A stretch of DNA of 64,000 nt from Eutreptiella sp. 'Long Island Sound 2002' (Eukaryota > Protista > Euglenida): assembly GCA_964036045.1 (NCBI GenBank), contig OZ038379.1, forward strand, positions 14,136,001 through 14,200,000, read 5' to 3'. Below the pieces are notes generated by a model. The model ran no database searches. It was given only the letters and a program-made list of their open reading frames with translations, and was not told where the DNA came from. The stretch's first letter is position 1, and each line of letters begins with the position of its first letter. Position numbers and translations under genes: made by a program. Shown piece by piece: positions 4,801-60,578 of the stretch.

Positions 4801-5067
4801 GCCCGCCTGGGCCCAGGCATCACAATGGCGTGGGTGTTGCAGGAGCTACGCCTGCACCAGCAGGTGGAGAGAGAGGGAGTATAGCGGGAACTTCTGGGAT
4901 GACAACTGTCGCCAGGAGGGTGACATCCAGGTGTCCCCGGCTCCCCCTCTTCACAGCGATAACCACACACTTGCACACGGCGCGCGCGCTACACACACAG
5001 CCCTCCCGTTTACCTGTACCCGTGGGTAGACATCCCGGCCATTTCCTTCTGGTAACAGCGCCTTCGG
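1897..5067 (+). mobile_element. 5'-truncated non-LTR retrotransposon (LINE-B) inserted in (CACAA)n
   Basis: Begins in the late RT/thumb region (LLCYMGTDIY; ALWGPWEHGCQGL resembles LINE-A MLWASIDDLGF). Continues into RNase H-like and Cys-His motifs. Ends GGTAACAGCGCCTTCGG followed directly by (CACAA)n. Confidence 0.85.
2618..4798 (+). pseudogene. LINE-B ORF2 C-terminal part: RNase H-like domain and CX2C...HX3C knuckle, frameshifted
   Basis: Acidic RNase H residues in VATVDAG / SQEGEAM / LVPDSEAA / NVRVDAAM. CLLCGAQPETAPHLWAC is typical of LINE C-termini. Frame break near 2620 and a 26-bp duplication at 4762-4813. Confidence 0.8.
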
Positions 5068-5293
5068 CACAACACAGCACAACACAACACGCTGCAACAC
5101 AACACAACACAACACAACACAACACAACACAACACAACACAGCACAACACAACACAGCACAACACAGCACGGCACAACACAACACAACACAACACAACAC
5201 AACACAACGCAACACAACACAACACAATGCAACACAGCACAGCACGGCACAACACAACACAACACAACGCAACACAACACAACACAACACAAT
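5068..5293 (+). repeat. (CACAA)n microsatellite, 3' flank of LINE-B
   Basis: Direct reading. Confidence 0.97.
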
Positions 5294-5295
5294 GC

Positions 5296-6285
5296 CCCCA
5301 AGAAGTGAGGCAGTGCATTGCAGGAGTGGCACTGCCTACTGCCCGAGGGCAGTGAGGCAGTGCATTGCAGGAGTTGCACTGCCCACTGCTCCCAGCCAGT
5401 GAGGCAGTGCATTGCAGGAGCTGCACTGCCCACTGCCCCCAGGCAGTGCGGCAGTGGATTGCAGGAGTGGCACTGCCCACTGCCCCCAGGCAGTGAGGCA
5501 GTGCATTGCAGGAGCTGCACTGCCCACTGCCCGCAGGCAGTGCGGCAGTGGATTGCAGGAGTGGCACTGCCCACTGCCCCCAGGCAGTGAGGCAGTGCAT
5601 TGCGGGAGTTGTACTGCCCACTGCTCCCAGGCAGTGAGACGGTGTATTGCGGGAGTTCCACTGCCCACTGCCCCCAGGCAGTGAGGCAGCGCATTGCAGG
5701 ATTTGCGCTGCCCACTGCCCCCAGGCAGTGGGGCAGAGCGTTGCAGGAGTTCCACTGCCCACTGCCCCCAGGCAGTGAGGCAGTGCGTTGCAGGAGTGGC
5801 ACAGCCTGCTGCCCGAGGGCAGTGAGGCAGTGCATTGCAGGAGTTGCACTGCCCACTGCCCCCAGCCAGTGAGGCAGTGCATTGCAGGAGTGGCACGGCC
5901 TGCTGCCCGAGGGCAGTGAGGCAGTGCATTGCAGGAGTTGCACTGCCCACTGCCCCCCGGCAGTGAGGCAGTGCATTGCAGGAGTTGCACTGTCACTGCC
6001 CCCAGGCAGTGAGGCAGTGCATAGCAGGAGATCCACTGCCCCCTGCCCCCGGGCCGTGGCGCAGTGTGTCGCAGGAGTTCCACTGACCACTGCCCCAGGC
6101 ACGGCGGCAGTGTATTGCAGGAGATGCCCGGCCCACTGCCCCAAGGCAGGGAGGCAGAGAATGGCAGGAGTACCACTCCCCACTGCCCTCAGGCAATGCG
6201 GCGGTGTGAAGCAGGATTTCCACTGCCCACAGCCCCCGGGCGGCGTGGCAGTGCGTTACACTGCCCACTGCCCCCTGCCCGCAAC
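5296..6285 (+). repeat. 47-bp hairpin-forming minisatellite, about 20 copies
   Basis: Unit GGCAGTGAGGCAGTGCATTGCAGGAGTGGCACTGCCCACTGCCCCCA; period measured 5490 to 5537. Confidence 0.93.
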
Positions 6286-6473
6286 AACCGTGCAGCAGGG
6301 CACGCACAGTGCAGTGTAGTGCACAGCACCAAGCAGTGCGGCACCACACAATAAGCACTGATGGTGCAGCGCGGCACGCAGGGTGCAGTGGGCCCACGAG
6401 ACCCTGTGTGACTGCGCGCAGGCGTCGGCAAGGCAGTGTCGGCCAAGTGCGAGAGTGCACTGGTCCGGCTATG

Positions 6474-6583
6474 CCACAACACACTTACGCACAGCGCGCA
6501 CACAACACACACAGCCCAGCCCGTTTACCTGTACCCGTGGGTAGACATCCCGGCCTTTTGCCTTTTGGTAACAGCGCCTTCGG
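6474..6583 (+). mobile_element. Second, about 110-bp copy of the LINE-B 3' terminus
   Basis: CCGTTTACCTGTACCCGTGGGTAGACATCCCGGCC...GGTAACAGCGCCTTCGG is near-identical to 5006-5067 and is again followed by (CACAA)n. Confidence 0.9.
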
Positions 6584-6710
6584 CACAACACAACACAACA
6601 CAACACAACACAACGCAACACAACACAACACAATGCAACACAGCACAGCACGGCACAACACAACACAACACAACGCAACACAACACAACACAATGCAACA
6701 CAACACAACG
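6584..6710 (+). repeat. (CACAA)n microsatellite
   Basis: Direct reading. Confidence 0.96.
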
Positions 6711-8385
6711 CAAAATAAGAGAACTGGTTCAGTGCCAGCTCTTAAATTCAATACAGAAAACATAACCTCCACTCCAAACTCAAAACAAGAGAACGGGTTC
6801 AGCGCCCGCCCTTGTAAATCACCCTGAACACAGCGCCACAGCGCCAAACGCAGCGCCACAGCGCCAAACACAGCGCCACAATGCCAAACACAGCGGAACA
6901 ACGCCAAACACAGCGCCATCGTGCCAAGCACAGCGCCACAGCGCCAATCAGAGCGCCACAACGCCAAACACAGCGCCACGGCGCCAAACAGAACGCCACA
7001 ACACCAAACAGAGCGCCACAGCGCCAAACGCAGCGCCACAGCACCAAACACAGCGCCAAACACAGCGCCACAGCGCCAAACAGAGCGCCACAGCGCCATA
7101 CACAGCGCCCCAGCGCCAAACACAGCGCCCCAGCGCCAAACACAGCACCACAGCGCCACGCACAGCACCACAGCACCAAACACAGCGCCATTGTACCAAG
7201 CACAGCGCCACAGCGCCAAGCAGAGCGCCACAACGCCAAACACAGGGCTACAGCGCCAACCACAGCGCCGCAGCACCAAACACAGCGCCACAGTGCCCAA
7301 CACAGCGGAGCAGCGCCAAACACAGCGCCACAGTGCCAAGCACAGCGCCACAGCACCAAACACAGCGGAGCAGCGCCAAACACAGCGCCACAATGCCAAG
7401 CACAGCGCCATAGCGCCAAACACAGCGCCACAACGCCAAACACTGCGCCACAGCGCCAAACCCAGCGCCATCGTGCCAAGCACAGCGCCGCAGCGCCAAA
7501 CACAGCGCCACAACGCCAAACACAGCGCCGCAACACCAAACACAGCGCCGCGGTGCCAAGCACAGCGGAACAGCGCCCAACACAGCGCCCCAGCGCCAAA
7601 CACAGCGCCACAGCGCCAAACACAACGCCACAGCGCCAAACCCTCCTTTCATCCCTCACTCCTTCCCTCACAACCCCTTCCCTCCCATTCCATGCCGTCC
7701 CCCCTCCTTCCTCAATCCTCCAATCAAATAAGAGAACTGGCACAGTGCCAGCTCTTAAATTCAACACAGAATACATAACCCACACTCCAAACTCAAAACA
7801 AGAGAACGGGGTCAGTGACCGCTCTTGTAAATCACCCCAATCAAATAAGAGAACTGGTTCAGTGCCAGCTCTTAAATTCAATACAAACAACAAACATACC
7901 CTCCACTCCAAACTCAAAACAAGAGAATGGGTTCAGTGCCCGCTTGTAAATCACCTGGAACACAGCGCCACAGCACCCAACGCAGCGCCACAGCGCCACA
8001 TCGCCCAACCACAGTGCCACAGCCCCAAACACAGCGCCACAGGGCCAAACACAGCGCCACAGGGCCAAACACAGCATCACAGCGCCAAACACAGCGCCCA
8101 AGCGCCCAACACAGGACCATAGCGCGCAACACAGCGCCACAACGCCCAACACAGCGCCACAGTGCCCAACACGGCGCCACAGCGCCAAATACAGCGCCAC
8201 ATCGCCCAACACAGCGCCAAACCCTTCTTTCATACCCCACTCCTTCCCTCACAACCCCTTCCCTCTCATTCCGTGCCTTCCTCCCTCCTTCCTCAATCCT
8301 CCAATCAAATAAGAGAACTGGGTCAGTGCCAGCTCTTAAATTCAATACTGAATACATGACCCCCACTCCAAACTCAAAACAAGAG
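6711..8385 (+). repeat. Composite repeat: (ACACAGCGCCACAGCGCCAA)n blocks alternating with a 115-190-bp module
   Basis: About 20-bp CAGCGCCA-rich units at 6826-7640 and 7958-8220. Module AAATAAGAGAACTGG..GTGCCAGCTCTTAAATTCAA..CTCCAAACTCAAAACAAGAG at about 6714, 7728, 7845 and 8307. Confidence 0.9.
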
Positions 8386-11134: not shown

Positions 11135-12098
11135 TCTAGTCTCGTCTAGTCGACTCTAGTATCGTCTCGTCTCCTCTCGTCTCCTCTCCTCTCCTCTCCT
11201 CTCCTCTCCTCTCCTCTCCTCTCCTCTCCTCTCCTCTCCTCTCCTCTCCTCTCCTCTCCTCTCCTCTCCTCTCCTCTCCTCTCCTCTCCTCTCGTCTCAT
11301 CCACAGTTGGGGGGCTTACCTGTGAGGCCTGACAACCCCCCCCCCTCCCCCCCTTCCCCCCCCCTCTGGACCCCCCAACCCATACTAGTCAGCACCTGGT
11401 TAGAAGCAACTTGGGCGCCAACAGCGCCCGGAAAATTTTTTTGAGCCCGGAAAATTTGCAACACACTTGATTTCCCCCCACTTGTTTACATTCAAAATGC
11501 TCACAATGAGTTAGGGAATGCCGTGCGACATGCCTTCTTCTGCTGGCCGGGAGGCCTTTGCTGATTCACAGGTACATCTGTTGGAATATGGTACTGTTTT
11601 TCAGTCGTTGTGAGGGGTAAAACCAAATTTCACTCCATTTGTGTATATTCAAAATGCTCAGAATGAAACGGGGAATTCAAAAATGCCCCCAAAACGGAGA
11701 AAATTTATCGACACCCACCCCCCCCCTCCCGGACCCCTCGACACCAACGCTGCGGGGGTTGGTGTCTAGAACTGAGCTGCAGACCCCCCCCCCCGTGGTC
11801 TCGTCTCCTCTCGTCTCGTCTGCTCTCGTCTCGTCTGCTCTCGTCTCGTCTCGTCTGCTCTCGTCTCTTCTCCCCTCGTCTGGTCTCCTCTCCTCTCGTC
11901 TTATCTCGTCTGGTCTCCTCTCGTCTCCTCTCCTCTCGTCAGGTCTCCGTCTCCTCTCCTCTCCTCTCCTCTCCTCTCCTCTCGTCTCGTGTCGTATCCT
12001 CTCCTCTCATCTCCTCTCCTCTCGTCTCATGTCGTCTCGTCTCGTCTCGTCTCGTCTCGTTTGCTCTCGTCTCATCTCGTCTCGTCTCGTCTCGTTCC
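11135..12098 (+). repeat. (CTCGT)n / (CTCCT)n pentamer microsatellites at about 11135-11298 and 11796-12095
   Basis: Direct reading; the interval between them is other dispersed repeat sequence. Confidence 0.93.
11704..11880. repeat. Short dispersed element abutting (CTCGT)n, copy 1
   Basis: TTTATCGAC.CCCACCCC..GGACCCCTCGACACCAACGCTGCGGGGGTTGGTGTCTAGAACTGAG.TGCAGACCCCCCCGTGGTCTCGTC is near-identical to 13485-13660. Confidence 0.88.
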
Positions 12099-12687
12099 GT
12101 GTAGTGTAGTGTAGTGTAGTGTAGTGTAGTTTAGTGTAGTGTGGTGTAGTGTAGTGTAGAGTAGAGTAGTGTAGTGCAGTGTAGTGTAGTGTAGTGTAGT
12201 GTAGTGTAGTGTAGTGTAGTGTAGTGTAGTGTAGTGTAGTGTAGTGTAGTGTAGTGTAGTGTAGTGTAGTGTAGTGTAGTGTAGTGTAGTGTAGTGTAGT
12301 GTAGTGTAGTGTAGTGTAGTGTAGTGTAGTGTAGTGTAGTGTAGTGTAGTGTAGTGTAGTGTAGTGTAGTGTAGTGTAGTGTAGTGTGGTGCAGTGTAGT
12401 GTAGTGTAGTGTAGTGTAGTGTAGTGTAGTGTAGTGTAGTGTAGTGTAGTGTAGTGTAGTGTAGTGTAGTGTAGTGTAGTGTAGTGTAGTGTGGTGCAGT
12501 GTAGTGTAGTGTAGTGTAGTGTAGTGTAGTGTAGTGTAGTGTAGTGTAGTGTAGTGTAGTGTAGTGTAGTGTAGTGTAGTGTAGTGTAGTGTAGTGTAGT
12601 GTAGTGTAGTGTAGTGTAGTGTAGTGTAGTGTAGTGTAGTGTAGTGTAGTGTAGTGTAGTGTAGTGTAGTGTAGTGTAGTGTAGTGT
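12099..12687 (+). repeat. (GTAGT)n pentamer microsatellite, about 118 nearly perfect units
   Basis: Direct reading. Confidence 0.98.
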
Positions 12688-12846
12688 GGTCCACAGCATA
12701 TCAGCTTCGCTTTGCTTTCCTCACTGACCCCGCTCCCTTTCTTTTGAAGTGACTGGGCGATTTTTTTAGCACCTTCGGCCGCCATCTGCGCCGCGGAATT
12801 TCCTTCGTCACCACCACCACCCCCCCGCCCCCCCTCTCTTCCGCAG

Positions 12847-13456
12847 GTACTGGACGGCCCCCCTGGACTGCATCGACGGGCTGTGCGCTTTCCTCTCCGT
12901 CGCCGGGCTGTTCTTCGTCTGGACCAAGACGTTCCGGGTCGTGCGGGTCATGCGGCTGCTCACGCACATGGAGGGCCCGCGGCGGGTGGTGGTGGCCCTG
13001 GCCGCCTCTCTCCCGGTCGTGTCGGGCATCGTGGTGCTCATCCTCCTGCTCTGGTTCCCCGCCGCCGTCATCGGCGTGCACCTCTTCCAGGGCCTCTACT
13101 GGACCTGCAGCCGCGTGCCCTACGTCGCGGAGGCGGCGGAGCTGCCGGAGGGGCAGGCGGACTGCGCGGCGCACTGGGTGCGGATGCTGCCCAACTTCGA
13201 CAACTTCTTCACGGCGATCCGGACGGCGCACATCCTGAGCACAGGGGAGGACTGGACGCGCATCATGTGGAGCAGTATCGACCGCGTGGCGCCGGGGGGG
13301 GCGCGGGTCCCGGACTCGCACCTCTTCTACGGGCTGTACTTCGTGATCTTCTACTTCTTTGGGGGGCTGATGCCGATGCAGATGGTGGTGGGCGCCATCG
13401 TGGACCACTTCAACTGCCGGGACGCGAGGGCCATGTTGATGACGGCGCAGCAGCAG
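12847..13456 (+). CDS. Channel exon: domain III S3-S6
   Basis: Acceptor TTCCGCAG| (phase 2). YWTAPLDCIDGL (S3), KTFRVVRVMRLL (S4), NFDNFFTAIRTAHILSTGEDW (pore, filter E), FYGLYFVIFYFFGGLMPMQMVVGAIVDHF (S6). Ends MTAQQQ at a GC donor. Confidence 0.93.
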
Positions 13457-13484
13457 GCGTGTGCCCCTCCCCCGGCCTCCCCCT

Positions 13485-13660
13485 TTTATCGACCCCCACC
13501 CCCCCCTCCCGGACCCCTCGACACCAACGCTGCGGGGGTTGGTGTCTAGAACTGAGTTGCAGACCCCCCCGTGGTCTCGTCTCCTCTCGTCTCGTCTGCT
13601 CTCGTCTCGTCTGCTCTCGTCTCGTCTCGTCTGCTCTCGTCTCCTCTCCCCTCGTCTGGT
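13485..13660. repeat. Short dispersed element abutting (CTCGT)n, copy 2
   Basis: Matches 11704-11880; starts about 30 bp after the GC donor. Confidence 0.88.
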
Positions 13661-14954
13661 CTCCCTGCCCCTCCGTTTCGCACTCCTCACCATTCTCCTC
13701 CCCCCCCCTCCCCCCCCCTCCCCCTCCCCCTCTTCCCTCCCCCATTGCCCTCCCCGAGCGTCCCAGTCATCGAGCGGTCGGGATGCCGGGTGCTTGTAAG
13801 AACCTCCAGTTCGATTCCCGGGGGGAGGGGGGGGGAGTACAGGTCGTGCCGCGCTGGGTCTGTGAAACAATGCCTGGCAGCCCCCAGCACGGGCCCCGGT
13901 AGTGGAGAGGGAAGGTACGGAACTGGTACGCGCCCAGGCACACCACCCACGTACGCTTGAAGCGGGAGGGAGGGGTACCCCCCCTGTTCCAGGTGGCGGT
14001 CGGCCCCGCCCACCACGTCTGTCCGCCCTCCACGCCCCCCCCCCCCCCCCCCACCGGGTTGTACCTGCCAGAAATCGCCTTCCAACCGCTTTCCCCACCG
14101 CCAGTCACCGCTCTTCCGACCACTGCTGCACCCCCCCCCCCCCCCCCTTTCGCCCCTCCCTCCCCAGGGACGCATTGGAAGGGGTGGGAAGCCCCTTCCC
14201 CCCCCCTCTCCAGGGCCCAGCCTACGCCCAGCCACTGCCTCCCCTGATGGCAAGTGCCAGCTTCAATGGCATTTGTCACGGACAGGAACCGCCCCTAACC
14301 ACTTTGGCAACGTTCCGCAACCCCCTATCTAACCGCGTCTGAGGCCCCTTTCCTTCTAATGGAGCCCTGCCCCTCCCTCCGAATCCTCGCTACACTTCCT
14401 CGGGGGGTTTCAAGGCGCTGTGCTCAGCGGCAGGGCGCATATGCGCGGGTGGTCTGCTGCATTGCCGTTGAGCCTCACGATCGGTGCCATGAGTACTGAC
14501 CCTCTGCTGTGCCCCTTCCCTGGGCCCCACTCCCGCCCCCTCCGCATCATGTTTCAAGGTGCCATCCCCTCCGCCCCCCAAAAGGGGGCTTGCGGGGAAA
14601 GGGGGCTCCCCTGACTGAGCAGTACTACCGGTGGAACAAAAAGGCGATTTTGTGCCCACCGTTTGCTATTTGGGCGTGGCGGTCGGCGGGTGACGGCTCA
14701 GCGTCTCTACAAGTGTGAGCGGGGTAGTGCCCCTTAGGGCCAGACCTCGTTTATTTTGCATCGTTTGAGTCATCTCAACAGGTTTTGTAGGTTTTGTGGC
14801 ACATCCATCGCTAGAGGGGGGGGGGGAAGAAGATCACGGATGGCCAGGGACGCCCCGGGCTCCGCATCAGGTCTTCGGCATTCAGAAGTCGCATTGCCCA
14901 TCCCCCTTGTGAAGCTGGGGGCAGAAAACGGCCTCAGTCACAGGAGCCCCTTTT

Positions 14955-41390: not shown

Positions 41391-42282
41391 GGCATGGCGT
41401 CCCATATGTGTTGCACCATTTCGTGCTTGTTTTGTTGCATTTCACGGAATTGTGCATGCGGAGTCAGGTCCGTCACACATTTTATAGACCATGGTGCCCT
41501 GTCCCGCCTGCCAAGCAAGATGAGGGAGAGGATGAGGTAGATGTGTGTGGGTTGTGCTGTGAGAGACGGCCCACCACCACAGTTTGTGGTGAGTGCAAGG
41601 AGCGTTTTTCTGCAGAATGTATCGAACCCACTTTTGTAGGGATTTTGGGGTTTGTCAGACACAGACCAAGTCACGAGCATTGATATTGAATTCCGCCGCT
41701 TTGCTTTATGCTGTTCTGCTTTGTAGGTCTGCAGTCCAGTCTGGCCTACTTGGGGCCCTTCTCTAGGGGAGGATAAACCTGGGGTTAAAGTCGGGATTGT
41801 TGAATACAAAAGTAGCGTGCTGGTGCGCGCCGTGCAAACACTCCCCCATGCCTGCTATGTCCCACAGTTGTAATGGTAGTGTTGGTGGTTTTTTGCGAGC
41901 CACGTGCAAGCTGCGCTTCAGGTACAAGGGGCATAGGTGCTGTATTGATTTTGGGGGCCAGGCGTAGTTTGAACCAGGGGGTTGACAGGGTACCCCTCTT
42001 GCGAATGTTGCAGCTGTAAATTGTCGGGGTCGCCATTTTCCAGAACTCCGCCCATCGTAAATTTTGGCTGGAACCGAATCCCATTGTGACCTCCAGGGCA
42101 CAGTGAAATGTACCAGCAGGATGTACCGGCAGGTCGACAATACTTCCATGCACAACTCACGCATGACTGGCACGGGCCCGTTTCCTGGGTGTGGTGGGTC
42201 GGCACAGACTGCCCAGTCTTAAGTCTGCCCACCCACCCACCCACCCACCCTTACACAACCTTTGTGCCAGCACAGCCATGTC

Positions 42283-42586
42283 TGTAATGGTACTGATCCT
42301 CTGTTATTGATTTGCGATATCCTGCAATGCTTTTTCAAAATCACTCAAATTGTTGAACTCCTTGCATCCTCTTAGTATCCCTCAGCGAACACAACAGAAG
42401 ACTGTCCCAAAACGTAATGTCATCCCGTTCTCTGTATAACAATAAAATTCACATATGCACTGCAAAATACCTAGATTATTTCTGATTGTCTATTTCATAT
42501 CGCTGTGTCCTGTTACGCATCTGCACGTACTCGCTGCGCATGCGCAACCCATCGCGTTAGCGATCTTTACACCGTGTCCTATTACA
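42283..42586 (-). repeat. 3' LTR (304 bp)
   Basis: Differs from the other LTR by about 6 substitutions and a 2-bp indel (counted by eye). Confidence 0.95.
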
Positions 42587-42596
42587 CTCCCTTCCC
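42587..42596 (-). other. Polypurine tract GGGAAGGGAG
   Basis: All-purine 10-mer directly abutting the 3' LTR on the minus strand. Confidence 0.85.
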
Positions 42597-44828
42597 AAGC
42601 TATTTGCTGGGGTTTACCTCAGCAAATGGCTGACTAAGGAAAATAGACACTCGGATCTTTACACTAGTGTGGGGGGGGATGGGCTGAGCTGCTGTAGACA
42701 GCCCAGAACAGGGTGTCAAACAAAAAAAGTCAAACACACACCCCAAACAAAAATTTACTGTGGTGTGCTGCAGTGCAAGAGTGCACTGCAGCCCTACATG
42801 CTAGTTAGAGTGGGTGTGGGGGTAGAAATGTGGGCGGCCTAAGTTGCACAGCAACCCTACAATAGTAACCTGCCTACAAACAGCTAACTGCCTGCAGCAA
42901 TGGCTAAGCAGGCATCGCACTGCACTAGACCTTGTGCAGAGGAGGCGGGGGGGGATGTCAAAAAATCTGTAACAATTTTCTGCCTGCCTGAAAAGGTTAG
43001 AATATTTTACAAATAAAAATTTGTATCCCTGCACTTGCAACCCTGCAGACAGTAACAGCACCACATAAAAAAAATTTTCTCTTCTTAAAACTTCTCAGAA
43101 GTTTGTCAAACCTGAAGTAAAGTACAAAAACCCATTAACCTGATTAACCGGACTGCTGAGTTCTGTCTTCACTTGTTTTCTGTCCGCATTGGCGCTGTAG
43201 TCTGCAGAGCAAGCAAGGCAAAGAAACAAGGAGAGAAGAAAAAAAGCGAAGCGAAAGCGAACCGAAAGCGCAGAAAAGCGATGCAAAGCAACCGCTCGTG
43301 ACAAACGACGGAACACTGCAGAGGAGCAGAAACACACCTGAAGTGCTCTGCTCCCGCGTTCTGTGTCGCTCGTTGTCTTGAACTTCTTTGCACCTGTGCA
43401 AAGCAAAAGAATAGAAAGAAAACACACATGTCATATAAAAAAAAACGACGCGTCAGATCGTCAGTCATACCTGATGAAAATTCCATACTGAAACTCCTGA
43501 TTCCCACCTCTGATTCCTGAACAGCTTGCAAAGCACACACAGAGGTTGTAAAATACACACACGCAAACGACAACTATGCCAATGCACACGATGTATATAA
43601 ACGCAAACGAAAGCCTACGGAAACGCAGCCTGAAATATTTTTATCATTGTATCTTGTGGTCAAACGCGTAACTGTATTTGTAAAATCTATAACAAAAACC
43701 AATCAAGTTGGACTGCGCAAACATACGCCAACGCTTTGCCACACCTGGCGCACGCACAAATGCACACACATACTTGCAAGAAAAAGCGAAAGACCAACAC
43801 ATACAGAATATTTTGAAATGTAAAAGAATTAAAGTAAGAAGTAAAAGTATACTGAAACACAAACAACAAAGAAAACTCACAACTCATGACACAACTGACA
43901 TGAACACACACAGGGTCACAAAAGATATAATACAAAAGCGGGCATACATTCCCTGCTCACTGACCCACAGTTACTATATACCTCAGACCAGGCCCTGTGC
44001 ATCGCGCACCACGGCCAGGGAGCGGGGCGAAACACACGCACCACTCCGAAGAGAAAAATCACCCTAGAAAAACTAACCATTCACAGGGAGGGGTGTCCGG
44101 GGGAAGCATCGCGCAACCCCAAGGACTGGGCGCTTCGCACGCCACACAAAAAATTCGCCGCATCACGCAGCGCGGGCGGGGTGCCTCACACACCTCTAAG
44201 CGCATCACGCGCACACCCTAGGGTTTGGGGTTTTTGAGCCTCACGCTCCTTAGACAGTAGGGGGTTTACCGTACCTCTAGTCGTCGCCCACGATAGGCAG
44301 CAGCCGCCGAAGGCAGGAAACAGAAAAAATAACACCCATTCGGAAATGTAGAAATAGAAACCCAGAAACACCTACCAACTCACCATGGAAGGTTGCACCC
44401 CTAATAATTGAAATACAAAGTGAAAATCAAAAACGAAATAAGGGTCGTGTCTTTGCCCAAAGGAGGCAGGAAGACAACCAATCCAAAAATACTTAAAAAA
44501 GAAAAGAAAGACAAAGAAAAGAGACAAAAAAATCCTCACCAAAAAGAAACACCAAGCAGGCGTGCAACAAACAACACACCGAAAATGTGTTTGTCGTTGC
44601 TCACCATACTCATGTGTCGTGTCTTGGCTGCTGCTCTTTGTGTCCACCTGCAAGGCAGGGCAGAAGACAAAACGCAAAGCAGCAGTTCTAAAATACTAAG
44701 TTACGAAGCGAGGCGCAGCGCGTTGAAATTCGAATCGCAATGTATTCACAACAAAAAAAAATATACAATGCACTCGTAAATTTACCTACATTACTTCTCA
44801 GGTTGCTTCGACTTACGCACTGCACTGT

Positions 44829-45320
44829 TCACCTTTGTTCAGCGTCACCCTGACGCTGCATTGTGGCGCTCTCCTTGGCGCCAGTCTCTTTTACCGCCAT
44901 CAACAAAGTTTCCACACGATTTCGCAAGACGGCGTTCTCATCATCCCTGGCCGCCAAACGTCGTTCCAACAAAACGATCCTCGCGCTCTGCTCAGCGACC
45001 TTCGTTTCAGCGGCTTCGAAGCGTACTCGGTCATCCTGTTGACGCTGCTGCATACGCGCGGTAAGAATCCTTATCTTGCGATGAAGACCTTTGCAGGCCT
45101 TGTCAGCGCGCCTTCGCTCTGTACGCAGCTCCTCAGCGTGCTGGGCGCGCGCCGCCTCAAGTAATCGGCTGATCATCTCCTTGGCGTCCGTCAAGCCCTC
45201 ACATGTTGCCATGGACGCTGAACTGGGTAGATCGCTCTCACACAAACCGTTGTCCCCATTGGATGACGGTCTCCTTGACGACGGCGTCCCTTGCACAGCA
45301 GACATACCAAAATTCTCCAC
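44829..45320 (-). CDS. Coiled-coil ORF inside the LTR element (about 158 aa from the ATG at 45305); possible Gag remnant
   Basis: Heptad-like, E/R/Q-rich (RLLEAARAQHAEELRTERRR..AVLRNRVETLL). Starts just downstream of the PBS, in the sense of the element. Confidence 0.55.
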   Translation of the reverse strand: MENFGMSAVQGTPSSRRPSSNGDNGLCESDLPSSASMATCEGLTDAKEMISRLLEAARAQHAEELRTERRRADKACKGLHRKIRILTARMQQRQQDDRVRFEAAETKVAEQSARIVLLERRLAARDDENAVLRNRVETLLMAVKETGAKESATMQRQGDAEQR

Positions 45321-45339
45321 GGCGATTTTTGAATATTTC

Positions 45340-45350
45340 GAGAACGGGAT
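45340..45350 (-). other. 11-nt primer-binding site ATCCCGTTCTC, complementary to a site within the LTR
   Basis: Abuts the 5' LTR and is not TGG-initiated. Complementary to GAGAAYGGGAT in the minus-strand LTR (42422-42432 perfect; 45488-45498 one G-U pair). Confidence 0.8.
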
Positions 45351-45652
45351 TGTAATGGTACTGATCCTCTGTTATTGATTTGCGATATCCTGCAATGCTT
45401 TTCCAAAATCACTCAAATTGTTGAACTCCTTGCATCCTCTTAGTATCTCAGCGAACACAACAGAAAACTGTCCCAAAACGTAATGTCATCCCATTCTCTG
45501 TATAACAATAAAACTCACATATGCACTGCAAAATACCTAGATCATTTCTGATTGTCTATTTCATATCGCTGTGTCCTGTTACGCATCTGCACGTACTCGC
45601 TGCGCATGCGCAACCCATCGCGTTAGCAATCTTTACACCGTGTCCTATTACA
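45351..45652 (-). repeat. 5' LTR (302 bp)
   Basis: TGTAAT...ATTACA direct repeat of 42283-42586. Confidence 0.95.
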
Positions 45653-46300
45653 TGTCTCAGCACGACGACCCCATGTCACCATGATGTTTGGGAGTGCCAT
45701 TTTTGTGGTCCGGAATACGGAGTCACCAGAATGTGAGCCGGTTGTGCGTGGCAGGACAAGGAAAGTAAGGCTGGAGCAGGCGCACAAGCGATTTTGATTG
45801 GTGTTGATTGGGGTGTGAATGGAACTTGACAGTCTCCCGGTGCAGCTTCACACCCTTCCCTCAGGCTAACGCAATCATAGCACAGGTTCAAGAAAACGAC
45901 CATGACACGGGGTAAACTGCTGGGCTTGCTACAGAAGCAAGACAATAGGCCTCAGGCGACCGCCCATGAGGATGTTCTATGCAGCCAACCCCTTTCTCTT
46001 TGCGTCACGTATGCTCCTGTCTGGGGTTACAGTAGGTCCCAGATTATTTTGGCTCCTAATTTGATGCAGTACCAAATGCAATGATACAGTAAGATCTGAG
46101 AAGCAAAGCGAAACTGCATTTTTGGCATTTTGCCAAAGACTTGGATTATGGAATGGATGGGGATGTGTGTGCGTGTGTGTGTGTGTGCGTGTGCTTGGGT
46201 GTCTCTGTGTCAACTGTCACAGTAAGGCGCTTAGGCGTGCAATTTTGGTGTTTTGCAGCTTGACAGGGGCAATCCATACCTGTTTGTGTGTGTGTGTGTG

Positions 46301-58874: not shown

Positions 58875-60578
58875 GGCCCGCCGGATTTAACCGTACCTGG
58901 GTTCGGCGTACCTGTCGGCTCGGCGTACCTGTCGGCTCGGCGTACTTTCGGCCGGCCGATCGGCCGGCCGAAAGTCCGGCCGTACCTTCGGCCCGCCGAC
59001 TCGGCTGGCCGAAGGTACGGCCGTACCTTCGGCCAGCCGATCGGCCGGCCGAAAGTACGGCCGTACCTTCGGCCGGCCGATCGGCCGGCCGAAGGTACGG
59101 TTTAATCCGTCACCCCCCCTTGGCAACGGAGGGTTAGGGTTAGATCCGGAACTCCCACCCAACTCCCCGCCGGGCCCTACGGGGTGAAAAGGGGGCACGG
59201 GCAGGGCCTCGGGGGTGGTTCCCGAGAGCGCTCAACCGTGGTCCACTATAAAGCTGTACACACAGAAGGCGGTGCACACACAAGGCGGAACACACAAAAG
59301 GCGGTCTATAGCCACCGCAGGAGTCATGTTATTAAAGGGGCCACAGGCAAGGCGGTACACACAGAAGGCGGTACACACAAAAGGCGGTGTGTGGCCACCG
59401 CAGGAGTCATGTTATTAAAGGGGCCACAGGCAAGGCGGTACACACAAAAGGCGGTGCACACACAAGGCGGAACACACAAAAGGCGGTCTGTGGCCACCGC
59501 AGGAGTCATGTTATTAAAGGGGCCACAGGCAAGGCGGTACACACAAAAGGCGGTGCACACACAAGGCGGAACACACAAAAGGCGGTCTGTGGCCACCGCA
59601 GGAGTCATGTTATTAAAGGGGCCACAGGCAAGGCGGTACACACAAAAGGCGGTGCACACACAAGGCGGAACACACAAAAGGCGGTCTGTGGCCACCGCAG
59701 GAGTCATGTTATTAAAGGGGACACAGGCAAGGCGGTACACACAAAAGGCGGTGCACACACAAGGCGGAACACACAAAAGGCGGTCTGTGGCCACCGCAGG
59801 AGTCATGTTATTAAAGGGGCCACAGGCAAGGCGGTACACACAAAAGGCGGTGCACACACAAGGCGGAACACACAAAAGGCGGTCTGTGGCCACCGCAGGA
59901 GTCATGTTATTAAAGGGGCCACAGGCAAGGCGGTACACACAAAAGGCGGTGCACACACAAGGCGGAACACACAAAAGGCGGTCTGTGGCCACCGCAGGAG
60001 TCATGTTATTAAAGGGGCCACAGGCAAGGCGGTACACACAAAAGGCAGTGCACACACAAGGCGGAACACACAAAAGGCGGTCTGTGGCCACCGCAGGAGT
60101 CATGTTATTAAAGGGGCCACAGGCAAGGCGGTACACACAAAAGGCGGTGCACACAAAAGGCGGACTGTGGCCACTGCAGGCGTCCTGTTATTAATATATA
60201 GGGGGGGGGGTTGTTAGTATATGGGGGTCTTACTACAAGGGGGGGTGACGGATTAAACCGTACCTTCGGCCGGCCGACTCGGCCGGCCGGAGGTACGGCC
60301 GTACTTTCGGCCGGCCGATTCGGCCGGCCAGAGGTACGGCCGTACTTCCGGCCGGCCGAAGGTACGGCCGTACTTTCGGCCGGCCGAGCCGGCCGGCCGA
60401 AGGTACGGCCGTACCTTCGGCCGGCCGAAAGTACGGCCGTACCTCCGGCCGTTTTTTCGGCCAAAACAAGGGGGGGATGACGGATTAAACCGTACTTTCG
60501 GCCGGCCGATCGGCCGGCCGAAAGTACGCCGAGCCGACAGGTACGCCGAACCCCAGGTACGGTTTAATCCGGTGAGCT
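58875..60578. mobile_element. Non-autonomous fold-back / Mutator-like DNA element with a 9-bp TSD
   Basis: TSD GGCTCAGCA at 58866-58874 and 60579-60587. Termini GGCCCGCCGGATTTAACC and (reverse complement) AGCTCACCGGATTAAACC. TIRs at about 58875-59122 and 60237-60578. No transposase. Confidence 0.88.
59260..60195 (+). repeat. 99-bp tandem array (about 9-10 copies) inside the fold-back element
   Basis: GCCACCGCAGGAGTCATGTTATTAAAGGGG at 59394, 59493, 59592 and onward to 60087. Internal AAGGCGG(T/A)ACACACA subunits. Confidence 0.96.

Follow-up and report, generated by a model that had tools for sequence, protein, structure and literature searches.

A pol-less LTR retrotransposon of the euglenid Eutreptiella with a primer-binding site complementary to its own LTR

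The window analysed here, a stretch of 64,000 nucleotides from the genome of Eutreptiella sp. 'Long Island Sound 2002', contains an LTR element whose primer-binding site (PBS) does not have the TGG with which tRNA-type sites start. How, then, would reverse transcription of this element be primed? Self-priming, in which the element supplies its own primer, has been established in Tf1, with predictions for its relatives (PMC4600332, PMC6317226), and the initial annotation had suggested the same mechanism at this locus.

Structure and coding capacity of the element

The complete element (42283-45652, 3.4 kb) lies on the minus strand, as do all the features described below. The 5' LTR (45351..45652, 302 nt, TGTAATAGG...CCATTACA) and the 3' LTR (42283..42586, 304 nt) are direct repeats of 97.4% identity, differing by six mismatches and one 2-nt gap, and both have the ends TGT..ACA. 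The same four nucleotides, GACA, are found at the outer edge of either LTR, at 45653..45656 on the 5' side and at 42279..42282 on the 3' side. Target site duplications (TSDs) of the same length, 4 bp, were observed in families A, B and F at other copies (TTCT, TTGG, AGGC and GGTT). The PBS, ATCCCGTTCTC (45340..45350), extends from the first base after the 5' LTR, while the polypurine tract (PPT), GGGAAGGGAG (42587..42596), adjoins the 3' LTR and recurs in other copies. The region therefore displays the structural features of an LTR retrotransposon, namely LTRs with TG..CA ends, a 4-bp TSD, a PBS after the 5' LTR and a PPT before the 3' LTR, and re-reading of the minus strand of 42283-45652 confirmed that the ends, TSD and PPT are intact, as first annotated. 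It is a single and relatively recent copy of a helper-dependent LTR retrotransposon, with LTRs, PBS, PPT and one conserved coiled-coil ORF.

This ORF, ORF1 (44829..45305), encodes 158 aa from its ATG, or 163 aa if counted from an upstream GTG at 45320. Its frame is open in most copies, and its dN/dS between families A and B is 0.23. The product is predicted to have a disordered N-terminus and one long helix forming a coiled coil; it matched no Pfam family, and neither a capsid nor a zinc-knuckle domain was found in it. In a profile search of 1.84 billion representative proteins, only 19 relatives were recovered, all of 354 aa or less and none of them a gag-pol fusion. The search of the protein collection confined ORF1 to this organism, where it was present in genome assemblies only and in no transcript contigs. 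The internal non-coding region (42597..44828) matched no Rfam family. The element has no further long ORF, and tblastn gave no match in it to the pol of the local gypsy, chromovirus and copia elements. Since ORF1 is the sole conserved ORF and no protease, reverse transcriptase (RT), RNase H or integrase is encoded, the description of the element as non-autonomous was borne out.

An autonomous partner, whose RT might be placed relative to Tf1/sushi, had also been envisaged; ORF1, profile and domain-family searches found none. The ORF1 protein matched only pol-less families of the genome. Searches with the Integrase_H2C2, Chromo and RVT_2 families led to an abundant Ty3/gypsy element, host CHD helicases, a chromodomain-transposase-like ORF and a Ty1/copia element, and the LTR elements among these results were all of the TGG type. 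From this genome or its sister assembly, five LTR elements with pol were read: the abundant Ty3/gypsy element, a chromovirus, the Ty1/copia element, a divergent 10.8-kb element and a second copia with the same LTR type as the first. The chromovirus and the 10.8-kb element were taken from ENA assemblies and are both tRNA-type. All five bear a TGG-type PBS, and none (0/5) has an anchored complement in its LTR; no pol-bearing element read shares the LTR ends of the present element or its self-complementary signal. Family E was considered as a chromovirus on account of a chromodomain match, which was ruled out: its 8.6-kb copy lacks pol and the chromodomain ORF is not an integrase. As all the pol-bearing elements read are tRNA-type, no source was found among them for a dedicated RNase H such as Tf1 needs.

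Complementarity between the LTR and the PBS

The PBS ATCCCGTTCTC is the exact 11-nt complement of GAGAACGGGAT, which lies intact in the 3' LTR (42422..42432), 139 nt ahead of the LTR end. Its counterpart in the 5' LTR, the proposed self-primer segment GAGAATGGGAT (45488..45498), differs from it by one C-to-T change at a CpG, leaving a single G-U pair with the PBS. The bases next to the match do not pair at either end, so that the complementarity is exactly 11 nt long. These readings agree with the initial annotation on every point: a PBS without TGG, an LTR complement that is perfect in one LTR and has one G-U in the other, and a match that stops at 11 nt. The element thus has the hallmark of the self-primed class, a PBS without TGG that is complementary to a segment of its own 5' LTR. 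Of 20,000 shuffles of the LTR, 2 produced an exact reverse complement of 11 nt or longer that was anchored at the first post-LTR base.

Family A, which has this primer segment, has at least 226 candidate matches in the genome. Among 30 of its copies, the PBS is intact in 27 and the LTR motif GAGAACGGGAT is unmutated in 23. With these retention values (0.90 and 0.77, compared with a mean of 0.83 for 11-mers), the two sites are no better preserved than other 11-mers, which is to be expected of dead copies. RNA folding was rejected as evidence: the fold-back helix is predicted, yet leaders whose interiors had been shuffled form it as well, in 195-200 of 200 cases.

Seven distinct primer/PBS pairs, designated A, B, F, G, C/D, E1 and E2, occur in related pol-less families, in this genome and in the sister assembly. 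They comprise 10-13 nt each, are all exact or nearly so, and all begin at the first base past the terminal ..ACA of the LTR. Besides GAGAACGGGAT of family A, the primer segments are GACTGATGGGAT (B), GAACAATGGGAT (F, an old copy with one end mismatch), GATCAACTGGAT (G), ACTAAAATCT (C/D), GGATGCAATGTTT (E1) and TCTAACGAACT (E2). Shuffling was applied to A, B, C/D, E1 and E2, and reached the observed length in at most 8 of 20,000 shuffles per pair. When the leaders of A, B, F and G are aligned, pairs are formed in 98 of 99 cells, and four of the nine alignable pairs are altered on both sides; sliding the 3' partner by 1-3 columns as a control reduced the paired cells to 27-60 of 99. The four double-sided changes in A/B/F/G are the PBS/LTR covariation that the initial annotation had proposed looking for among family members, and they support the view that compensatory change has preserved the pairing among related families. 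A few extra upstream bases of families D and E2 are able to pair across a small bulge. The similarity of families C and D ends right after the primer segment and was considered as a scar left by recombination where cleavage would occur; this idea was dropped, as the alignment is a more complex mosaic.

Proposed priming mechanism and alternative explanations

Taken together, the comparisons suggest, with a probability of about 75%, that the element is helper-dependent and starts reverse transcription with 11 nt of its own RNA, not with a host tRNA. Of the self-priming first annotated for it, the pairing of the PBS with its own LTR and the covariation across families stand as observations, and priming itself is what we infer from them. 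The RNA would start within the LTR, either at GAGAACGGGAT or a short way upstream of it. The 11-nt segment would fold back about 140 nt to the PBS directly after U5, and the duplex would be cut at its 3' end in a manner analogous to that of the Tf1 RT/RNase H in fission yeast. Minus-strand DNA synthesis could then be primed from the freed 3'-OH. The first strand transfer would be followed by renewed copying of the segment from the 3' R, and a plus-strand copy of the RNA primer might re-write the PBS; we propose that both sites would thereby stay matched while drifting. The transcription start (45498), the cleavage and the identity of the enzyme are what we infer within this scheme. The sharp 5' edge of the complementarity is compatible with the segment forming the first nucleotides of the mRNA (the start of R), and the extra pairing seen in D and E2 gives a hint that transcription may begin further upstream.

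A chance match has next to no probability as an explanation. A single family would be a single observation, the one point in favour of chance, but the 2 of 20,000 shuffles obtained for family A are joined by six further pairs of different sequences, and co-variation across families refutes this reading. The primer might otherwise be a fragment of a host tRNA or of another small RNA, with the LTR copy incidental. Such half-tRNA priming is known: in copia, one half of the initiator tRNA serves as the primer (PMC6317226). Seven sites would nevertheless require seven host fragments, each copied without reason to the equivalent place in an LTR. None of the seven sites (0/7) starts with TGG, and ARAGORN and Rfam found no tRNA-like RNA in the element. 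Complementarity to host tRNAs, a further check raised by the initial annotation, was carried out in part: the family A primer occurs in a tRNA T-loop context at chance level (5 vs 2 and 1 vs 1), and it stands beside a T-loop motif at none of 63 scored tRNA loci. A host fragment is accordingly very unlikely as the primer.

More weight, if still little, can be given to the possibility that the pairing is real and serves another purpose, such as PBS masking, leader circularisation, or packaging and dimerisation, while the true primer is another molecule with the same 3' sequence. Regulatory long-range pairings do occur in retroviral leaders, and co-variation demonstrates pairing and not priming. 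The border of the duplex, however, coincides with the U5/PBS junction in all seven pairs, which is where the 3'-OH of a primer must sit, and a masking helix would have no reason to keep to it. A separate primer would also have had to co-vary seven times, and no tRNA-type site is present nearby. It is about equally improbable that priming occurs in trans, two RNAs of the family being packaged together and the 5' end of one annealing to the PBS of the other in place of the fold-back. The RNAs of LTR elements are generally dimeric in packaging, and sequence data do not separate cis from trans. Trans priming is a variant of self-priming, not a separate mechanism, and there is no point against it.

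Comparison with known systems and significance in euglenids

The nearest comparison is with the Tf1/sushi group and, in fission yeasts, with Tf1 and Tf2 of Schizosaccharomyces pombe and Tj1 of S. japonicus (Levin 1995, 1996; Lin and Levin 1997; Butler et al. 2001, as cited in PMC4600332); the Tf1 primer segment is the first 11 nt of the mRNA. As in these elements, the present one has no tRNA-type PBS, the site that immediately follows U5 is complementary to a short LTR-derived RNA segment, of 11 nt in Tf1, and the 3' end of the primer is at the U5 border. The Tf1 group, however, consists of autonomous chromoviruses in which the element's own RT/RNase H makes the primer, whereas the present element has no pol; its host is a euglenid and not a fungus or a vertebrate; and the local families differ in primer length (10 to 13 nt). 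Moreover, the segment is the mRNA start in Tf1, while here it is the putative start. As the element carries no RT and no partner was found, the comparison with Tf1/sushi is limited to mechanism and does not extend to membership.

Outside Tf1/sushi, self-priming has been predicted for the plant Tcn1 chromoviruses and for the TAR lineage of Ty1/copia, including Houba and Osr-1 (PMC6317226). The argument in those cases is likewise drawn from sequence, a PBS complementary to the 5' LTR with no tRNA match. Those elements are autonomous and were placed by RT phylogeny, in contrast to the co-variation among pol-less families used here. The LARDs, TRIMs and TR-GAG elements of plants, all non-autonomous, are also comparable; TRIMs are treated in PMC6934838. 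The element shares with them the possession of LTRs, PBS and PPT without pol, so that enzymes act in trans, and it resembles TR-GAG elements in keeping one selected ORF. Described examples of these groups generally have tRNA-type sites, however, and the ORF found here is a single long coiled coil that lacks capsid and zinc-knuckle domains and is confined to this organism.

The genome had been described as protist-like, and it is that of a euglenid, with 2,588 occurrences of the host spliced leader. A literature search found no published report of self-priming in euglenids. The proposal that the mechanism extends to a new host lineage stands in this respect, in a narrower form, given the earlier predictions beyond Tf1/sushi: the mechanism is known, and the novelty lies in the host group and in how clearly related families co-vary. 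To our knowledge, self-primed reverse transcription has been proved experimentally for the fission-yeast elements only, and its attribution to other fungi, vertebrates and some plant lineages comes from sequence comparison.

Seven pairs that keep one border are about the strongest sequence evidence possible for such a pairing, and they would place self-priming on a very distant branch of the eukaryotes, in several families without enzymes of their own. Annotation pipelines that rely on tRNA sites will miss or mis-score such families, in a genome of which a fifth to a third consists of LTR elements (PMC11252322). If no self-primed autonomous element exists, the families would be mobilised by tRNA-primed helpers. 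It is conceivable, though rather doubtful, that self-priming is here a device of the parasite and not a trait common to it and its helper: each pol-less family of this group would self-prime and carries a coiled-coil ORF1 of its own, while each sampled pol-bearing LTR element has a tRNA-type site. Were this so, no dedicated RT of the Tf1 type would be needed to generate the primer by cutting the RNA duplex, and the parasite would be freed from matching the primer tRNA of its helper.

Structure and coding content of the element

The window region 45656-42279, read on the minus strand, carries a complete LTR element of textbook type. Its 5' LTR (302 nt, TGTAATAGG...CCATTACA, 45652-45351) directly adjoins an 11-nt primer-binding site (PBS; ATCCCGTTCTC, 45350-45340), which is followed by ORF1 (45305-44829, 158 aa from its ATG), an interior of about 2.2 kb without coding capacity, a polypurine tract (GGGAAGGGAG, 42596-42587) and, adjoining the latter, the 3' LTR (304 nt, 42586-42283). 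The 4-nt target-site duplication GACA lies outside both LTRs, which are 97.4% identical (six substitutions and one 2-nt gap). In the 3' LTR, the segment GAGAACGGGAT (42432-42422) is the exact reverse complement of the PBS 11-mer; its 5' LTR counterpart, GAGAATGGGAT (45498-45488), bears a CpG-to-TpG change that still permits a G-U pair with the PBS. The bases next to the match are unpaired on either side. The initial annotation had placed an element with such a PBS and LTR complement at 42283-45652, and all its observed parts proved correct on re-reading the coordinates. Further direct repeat pairs (146-387 nt, 82-96% identity, 1.1-1.8 kb apart) occur in the window at 4962-8222, 11704-13664 and 58938-60428.

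No remnants of reverse transcriptase (RT), RNase H, protease or integrase were found in the element in a search with the local pol types; it has LTR anatomy and needs enzymes from a helper. ORF1 (44829-45305, minus strand; outside the window L101:4501-4977, L105:4501-4962 and L102:9001-9522) matches no Pfam family and contains neither a capsid nor a zinc-knuckle domain. It is predicted to form a disordered N-terminal part and, after it, a single helix about 120 residues long (pLDDT 84). Most copies keep the frame open, dN/dS is 0.23 between families A (that of the window element) and B and 0.33-0.44 against family G, and only 19 relatives, all short, were found among 1.84 billion representative proteins. 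Because of these features, ORF1 is a lineage-restricted coiled-coil protein under purifying selection and no recognisable Gag. In family E, an 8.6-kb element without pol (L097:917 to L089:2050, G000:C17:10088716-10097312) has a self-complementary PBS and a 5-bp target-site duplication, CAGAG. Inside it are a fragment that resembles H+-pyrophosphatase and an open frame of 450 codons, which ends in two chromodomains with a zinc-finger-like motif ahead of them; it looks as if a non-autonomous LTR element had captured genes.

Co-variation of the LTR segment and the PBS

With the complement anchored at the base that immediately follows the LTR, shuffling the family A LTR 20,000 times gave an exact match of 11 nt or more twice. 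Since one family is one observation, the real test of chance is the comparison with relatives. Diverged relatives were reached via ORF1, and ENA assemblies, from this organism or a sister one, supplied extra copies. The LTR segment and PBS are GAGAACGGGAT and ATCCCGTTCTC in family A (11 nt, exact), GACTGATGGGAT and ATCCCATCAGTC in family B (12 nt, exact; ORF1 66-80% identical), GATCAACTGGAT and ATCCAGTTGATC in family G (12 nt, exact), and GAACAATGGGAT and TTCCCATTGTTC in family F, an old copy (LTRs 93% identical) with one end mismatch. Families C and D (ORF1 36-43% identical) share ACTAAAATCT and AGATTTTAGT (10 nt), and two families with unrelated interiors have GGATGCAATGTTT and AAACATTGCATCC (E1, 13 nt) and TCTAACGAACT and AGTTCGTTAGA (E2, 11 nt). 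In all seven pairs the PBS starts at the first base after the LTR-terminal ..ACA, and the segment lies 75-192 nt from the LTR end. For each pair shuffled (A, B, C/D, E1 and E2), the observed match length was reached by at most 8 of 20,000 LTR shuffles.

The PBS/LTR covariation proposed as a check by the initial annotation was indeed found among relatives, with seven different pairs. In the leader alignment of families A, B, F and G, where nine pairs were comparable column by column, 98 of 99 cells were paired and four pairs were altered on both sides, against only 27-60 of 99 cells paired when the 3' partner was slid by 1-3 columns. This co-variation among families shows the predicted pairing of LTR segment and PBS to be under selection. 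In families D and E2, a few extra bases upstream of the segment can pair across a bulge; this suggests that in some families the RNA may start slightly upstream of the segment, which the self-priming model tolerates. In all seven pairs the proposed primer ends in U at its 3' end and the PBS begins with A, right after ..ACA, which may reflect a cleavage preference of the processing enzyme.

The host genome measures 2.28 Gb and contains 2,588 occurrences of the 26-nt Euglena gracilis spliced leader, versus 0 for the reversed control, which identifies the host as a Euglena or a very close relative. A 5' LTR plus PBS query gave 226 candidate places, of which 40 were scored and are 93-96% identical to the window copy. 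Of 30 aligned family A copies, 27 retain an intact PBS and 23 an intact LTR segment; this retention does not exceed that of the average LTR 11-mer (0.83), as expected for copies that decay neutrally once inserted. The 4-bp duplications TTCT, TTGG, AGGC and GGTT flank further copies of families A, B and F. Tandem arrays with common LTRs occur in family A (three LTRs, spacing 2.9 and 3.1 kb) and family E (four LTRs, spacing 1,860 nt), at L031:1961-8278 (G000:C10) and G000:C1:126999673-127005353. A family A copy with LTRs 98.1% identical (L104:10576-13788) is nested in an element (L104:6577-20606) whose LTRs, compared over the 223 nt visible, are 100% identical. This apparent paradox in age may come from gene conversion or from the shortness of the stretch compared.

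Pol-bearing elements and priming by host tRNA

The pol-bearing LTR elements read in this genome or the sister assembly have ordinary, tRNA-type sites. The LTR is followed by AG-TGGTAGCCGGCTAGG in a 10.4-kb Ty3/gypsy element (reached through a domain search that gave 26,053 candidates), TT-TGGTTTCAGCCGC in a compact chromovirus, C-TGGTAGCATTATC in a Ty1/copia element and TGGTAGCAGAGGC in a divergent 10.8-kb element. No anchored LTR complement of even 5 nt was found in the gypsy, chromovirus and copia elements (three shuffled controls). Priming by tRNA is thus supported in this host, and the group with TGTAA..TTACA ends stands apart. Alternatively, a host tRNA or small-RNA fragment could prime the pol-less families, the LTR copy being incidental. 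ARAGORN detected no tRNA in the window, and the element gave no Rfam match at a threshold as loose as E = 1. In a partial test, the family A primer occurred 5 times (control 2) upstream of a T-loop motif at a distance of up to 30 nt and once (control 1) just downstream of such a motif; none of these matches coincides with any of the 63 tRNA loci that were scored. Logic gives a stronger argument: each of the seven different sites would require a host fragment of its own, and every such fragment would also have to occur in the LTR without reason. Priming by a host RNA is therefore very improbable.

A tRNA-like T-arm stretch with stem-like flanks, of GGTTCGATTCC or GGTTCAATTCC type, is present in the LTRs of the tRNA-primed copia elements and in those of the 10.8-kb element (L100:1444-1835, L099:6557-6960, L104:6577-7370). 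Upstream of gag, the very abundant 10.4-kb Ty3/gypsy element (L055+L053+L054, G000:C2:163265500-163281000, minus strand) has an ORF of 243 aa with no Pfam match, and two more ORFs, of 191 and 175 aa, follow pol downstream. At L080 and L084 (G000:C5:142574575-142576075, G000:C7:26526070-27580), a repeated long ORF runs on downstream of a chromodomain match and resembles a transposase-type protein rather than an integrase.

A self-priming model

The self-priming reading takes as its model the steps described for Tf1, the fission-yeast element primed by the first 11 nt of its own mRNA (PMC4600332 and papers cited there). The RNA would start at, or just before, the LTR segment, which would fold back onto the PBS; the duplex would be cut past the last pair, and the new 3'-OH would prime minus-strand synthesis. 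The co-variation shows a selected RNA pairing of LTR segment and PBS, with its 3' end exactly at the U5 border. Plus-strand strong-stop DNA would copy the RNA primer and write changes of the 5' segment into the progeny PBS, which would explain the joint drift of both sites. The likeness to Tf1, as judged from pairing geometry, concerns the probable working mode of the element; membership in the Tf1/sushi group would be judged from an RT, which the element lacks.

No helper was found for the pol-less families, all pol-bearing LTR elements read being of tRNA type. The duplications of family E (5 bp; GGTCG, CAGAG) differ from the 4-bp ones of A, B and F, so at least two integrases are involved. 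It seems unlikely, though conceivable, that self-priming is limited to such parasites, their helpers not being self-primed.

The mechanism is known, not new, since self-priming was already predicted outside Tf1/sushi, for Tcn1 and TAR elements of plants (PMC6317226). Our literature search found no paper linking it to Euglena and a single one on non-autonomous LTR elements mentioning it (PMC6934838), which gives no mechanism for its own elements. What makes the present element notable is its unusually clean co-variation.
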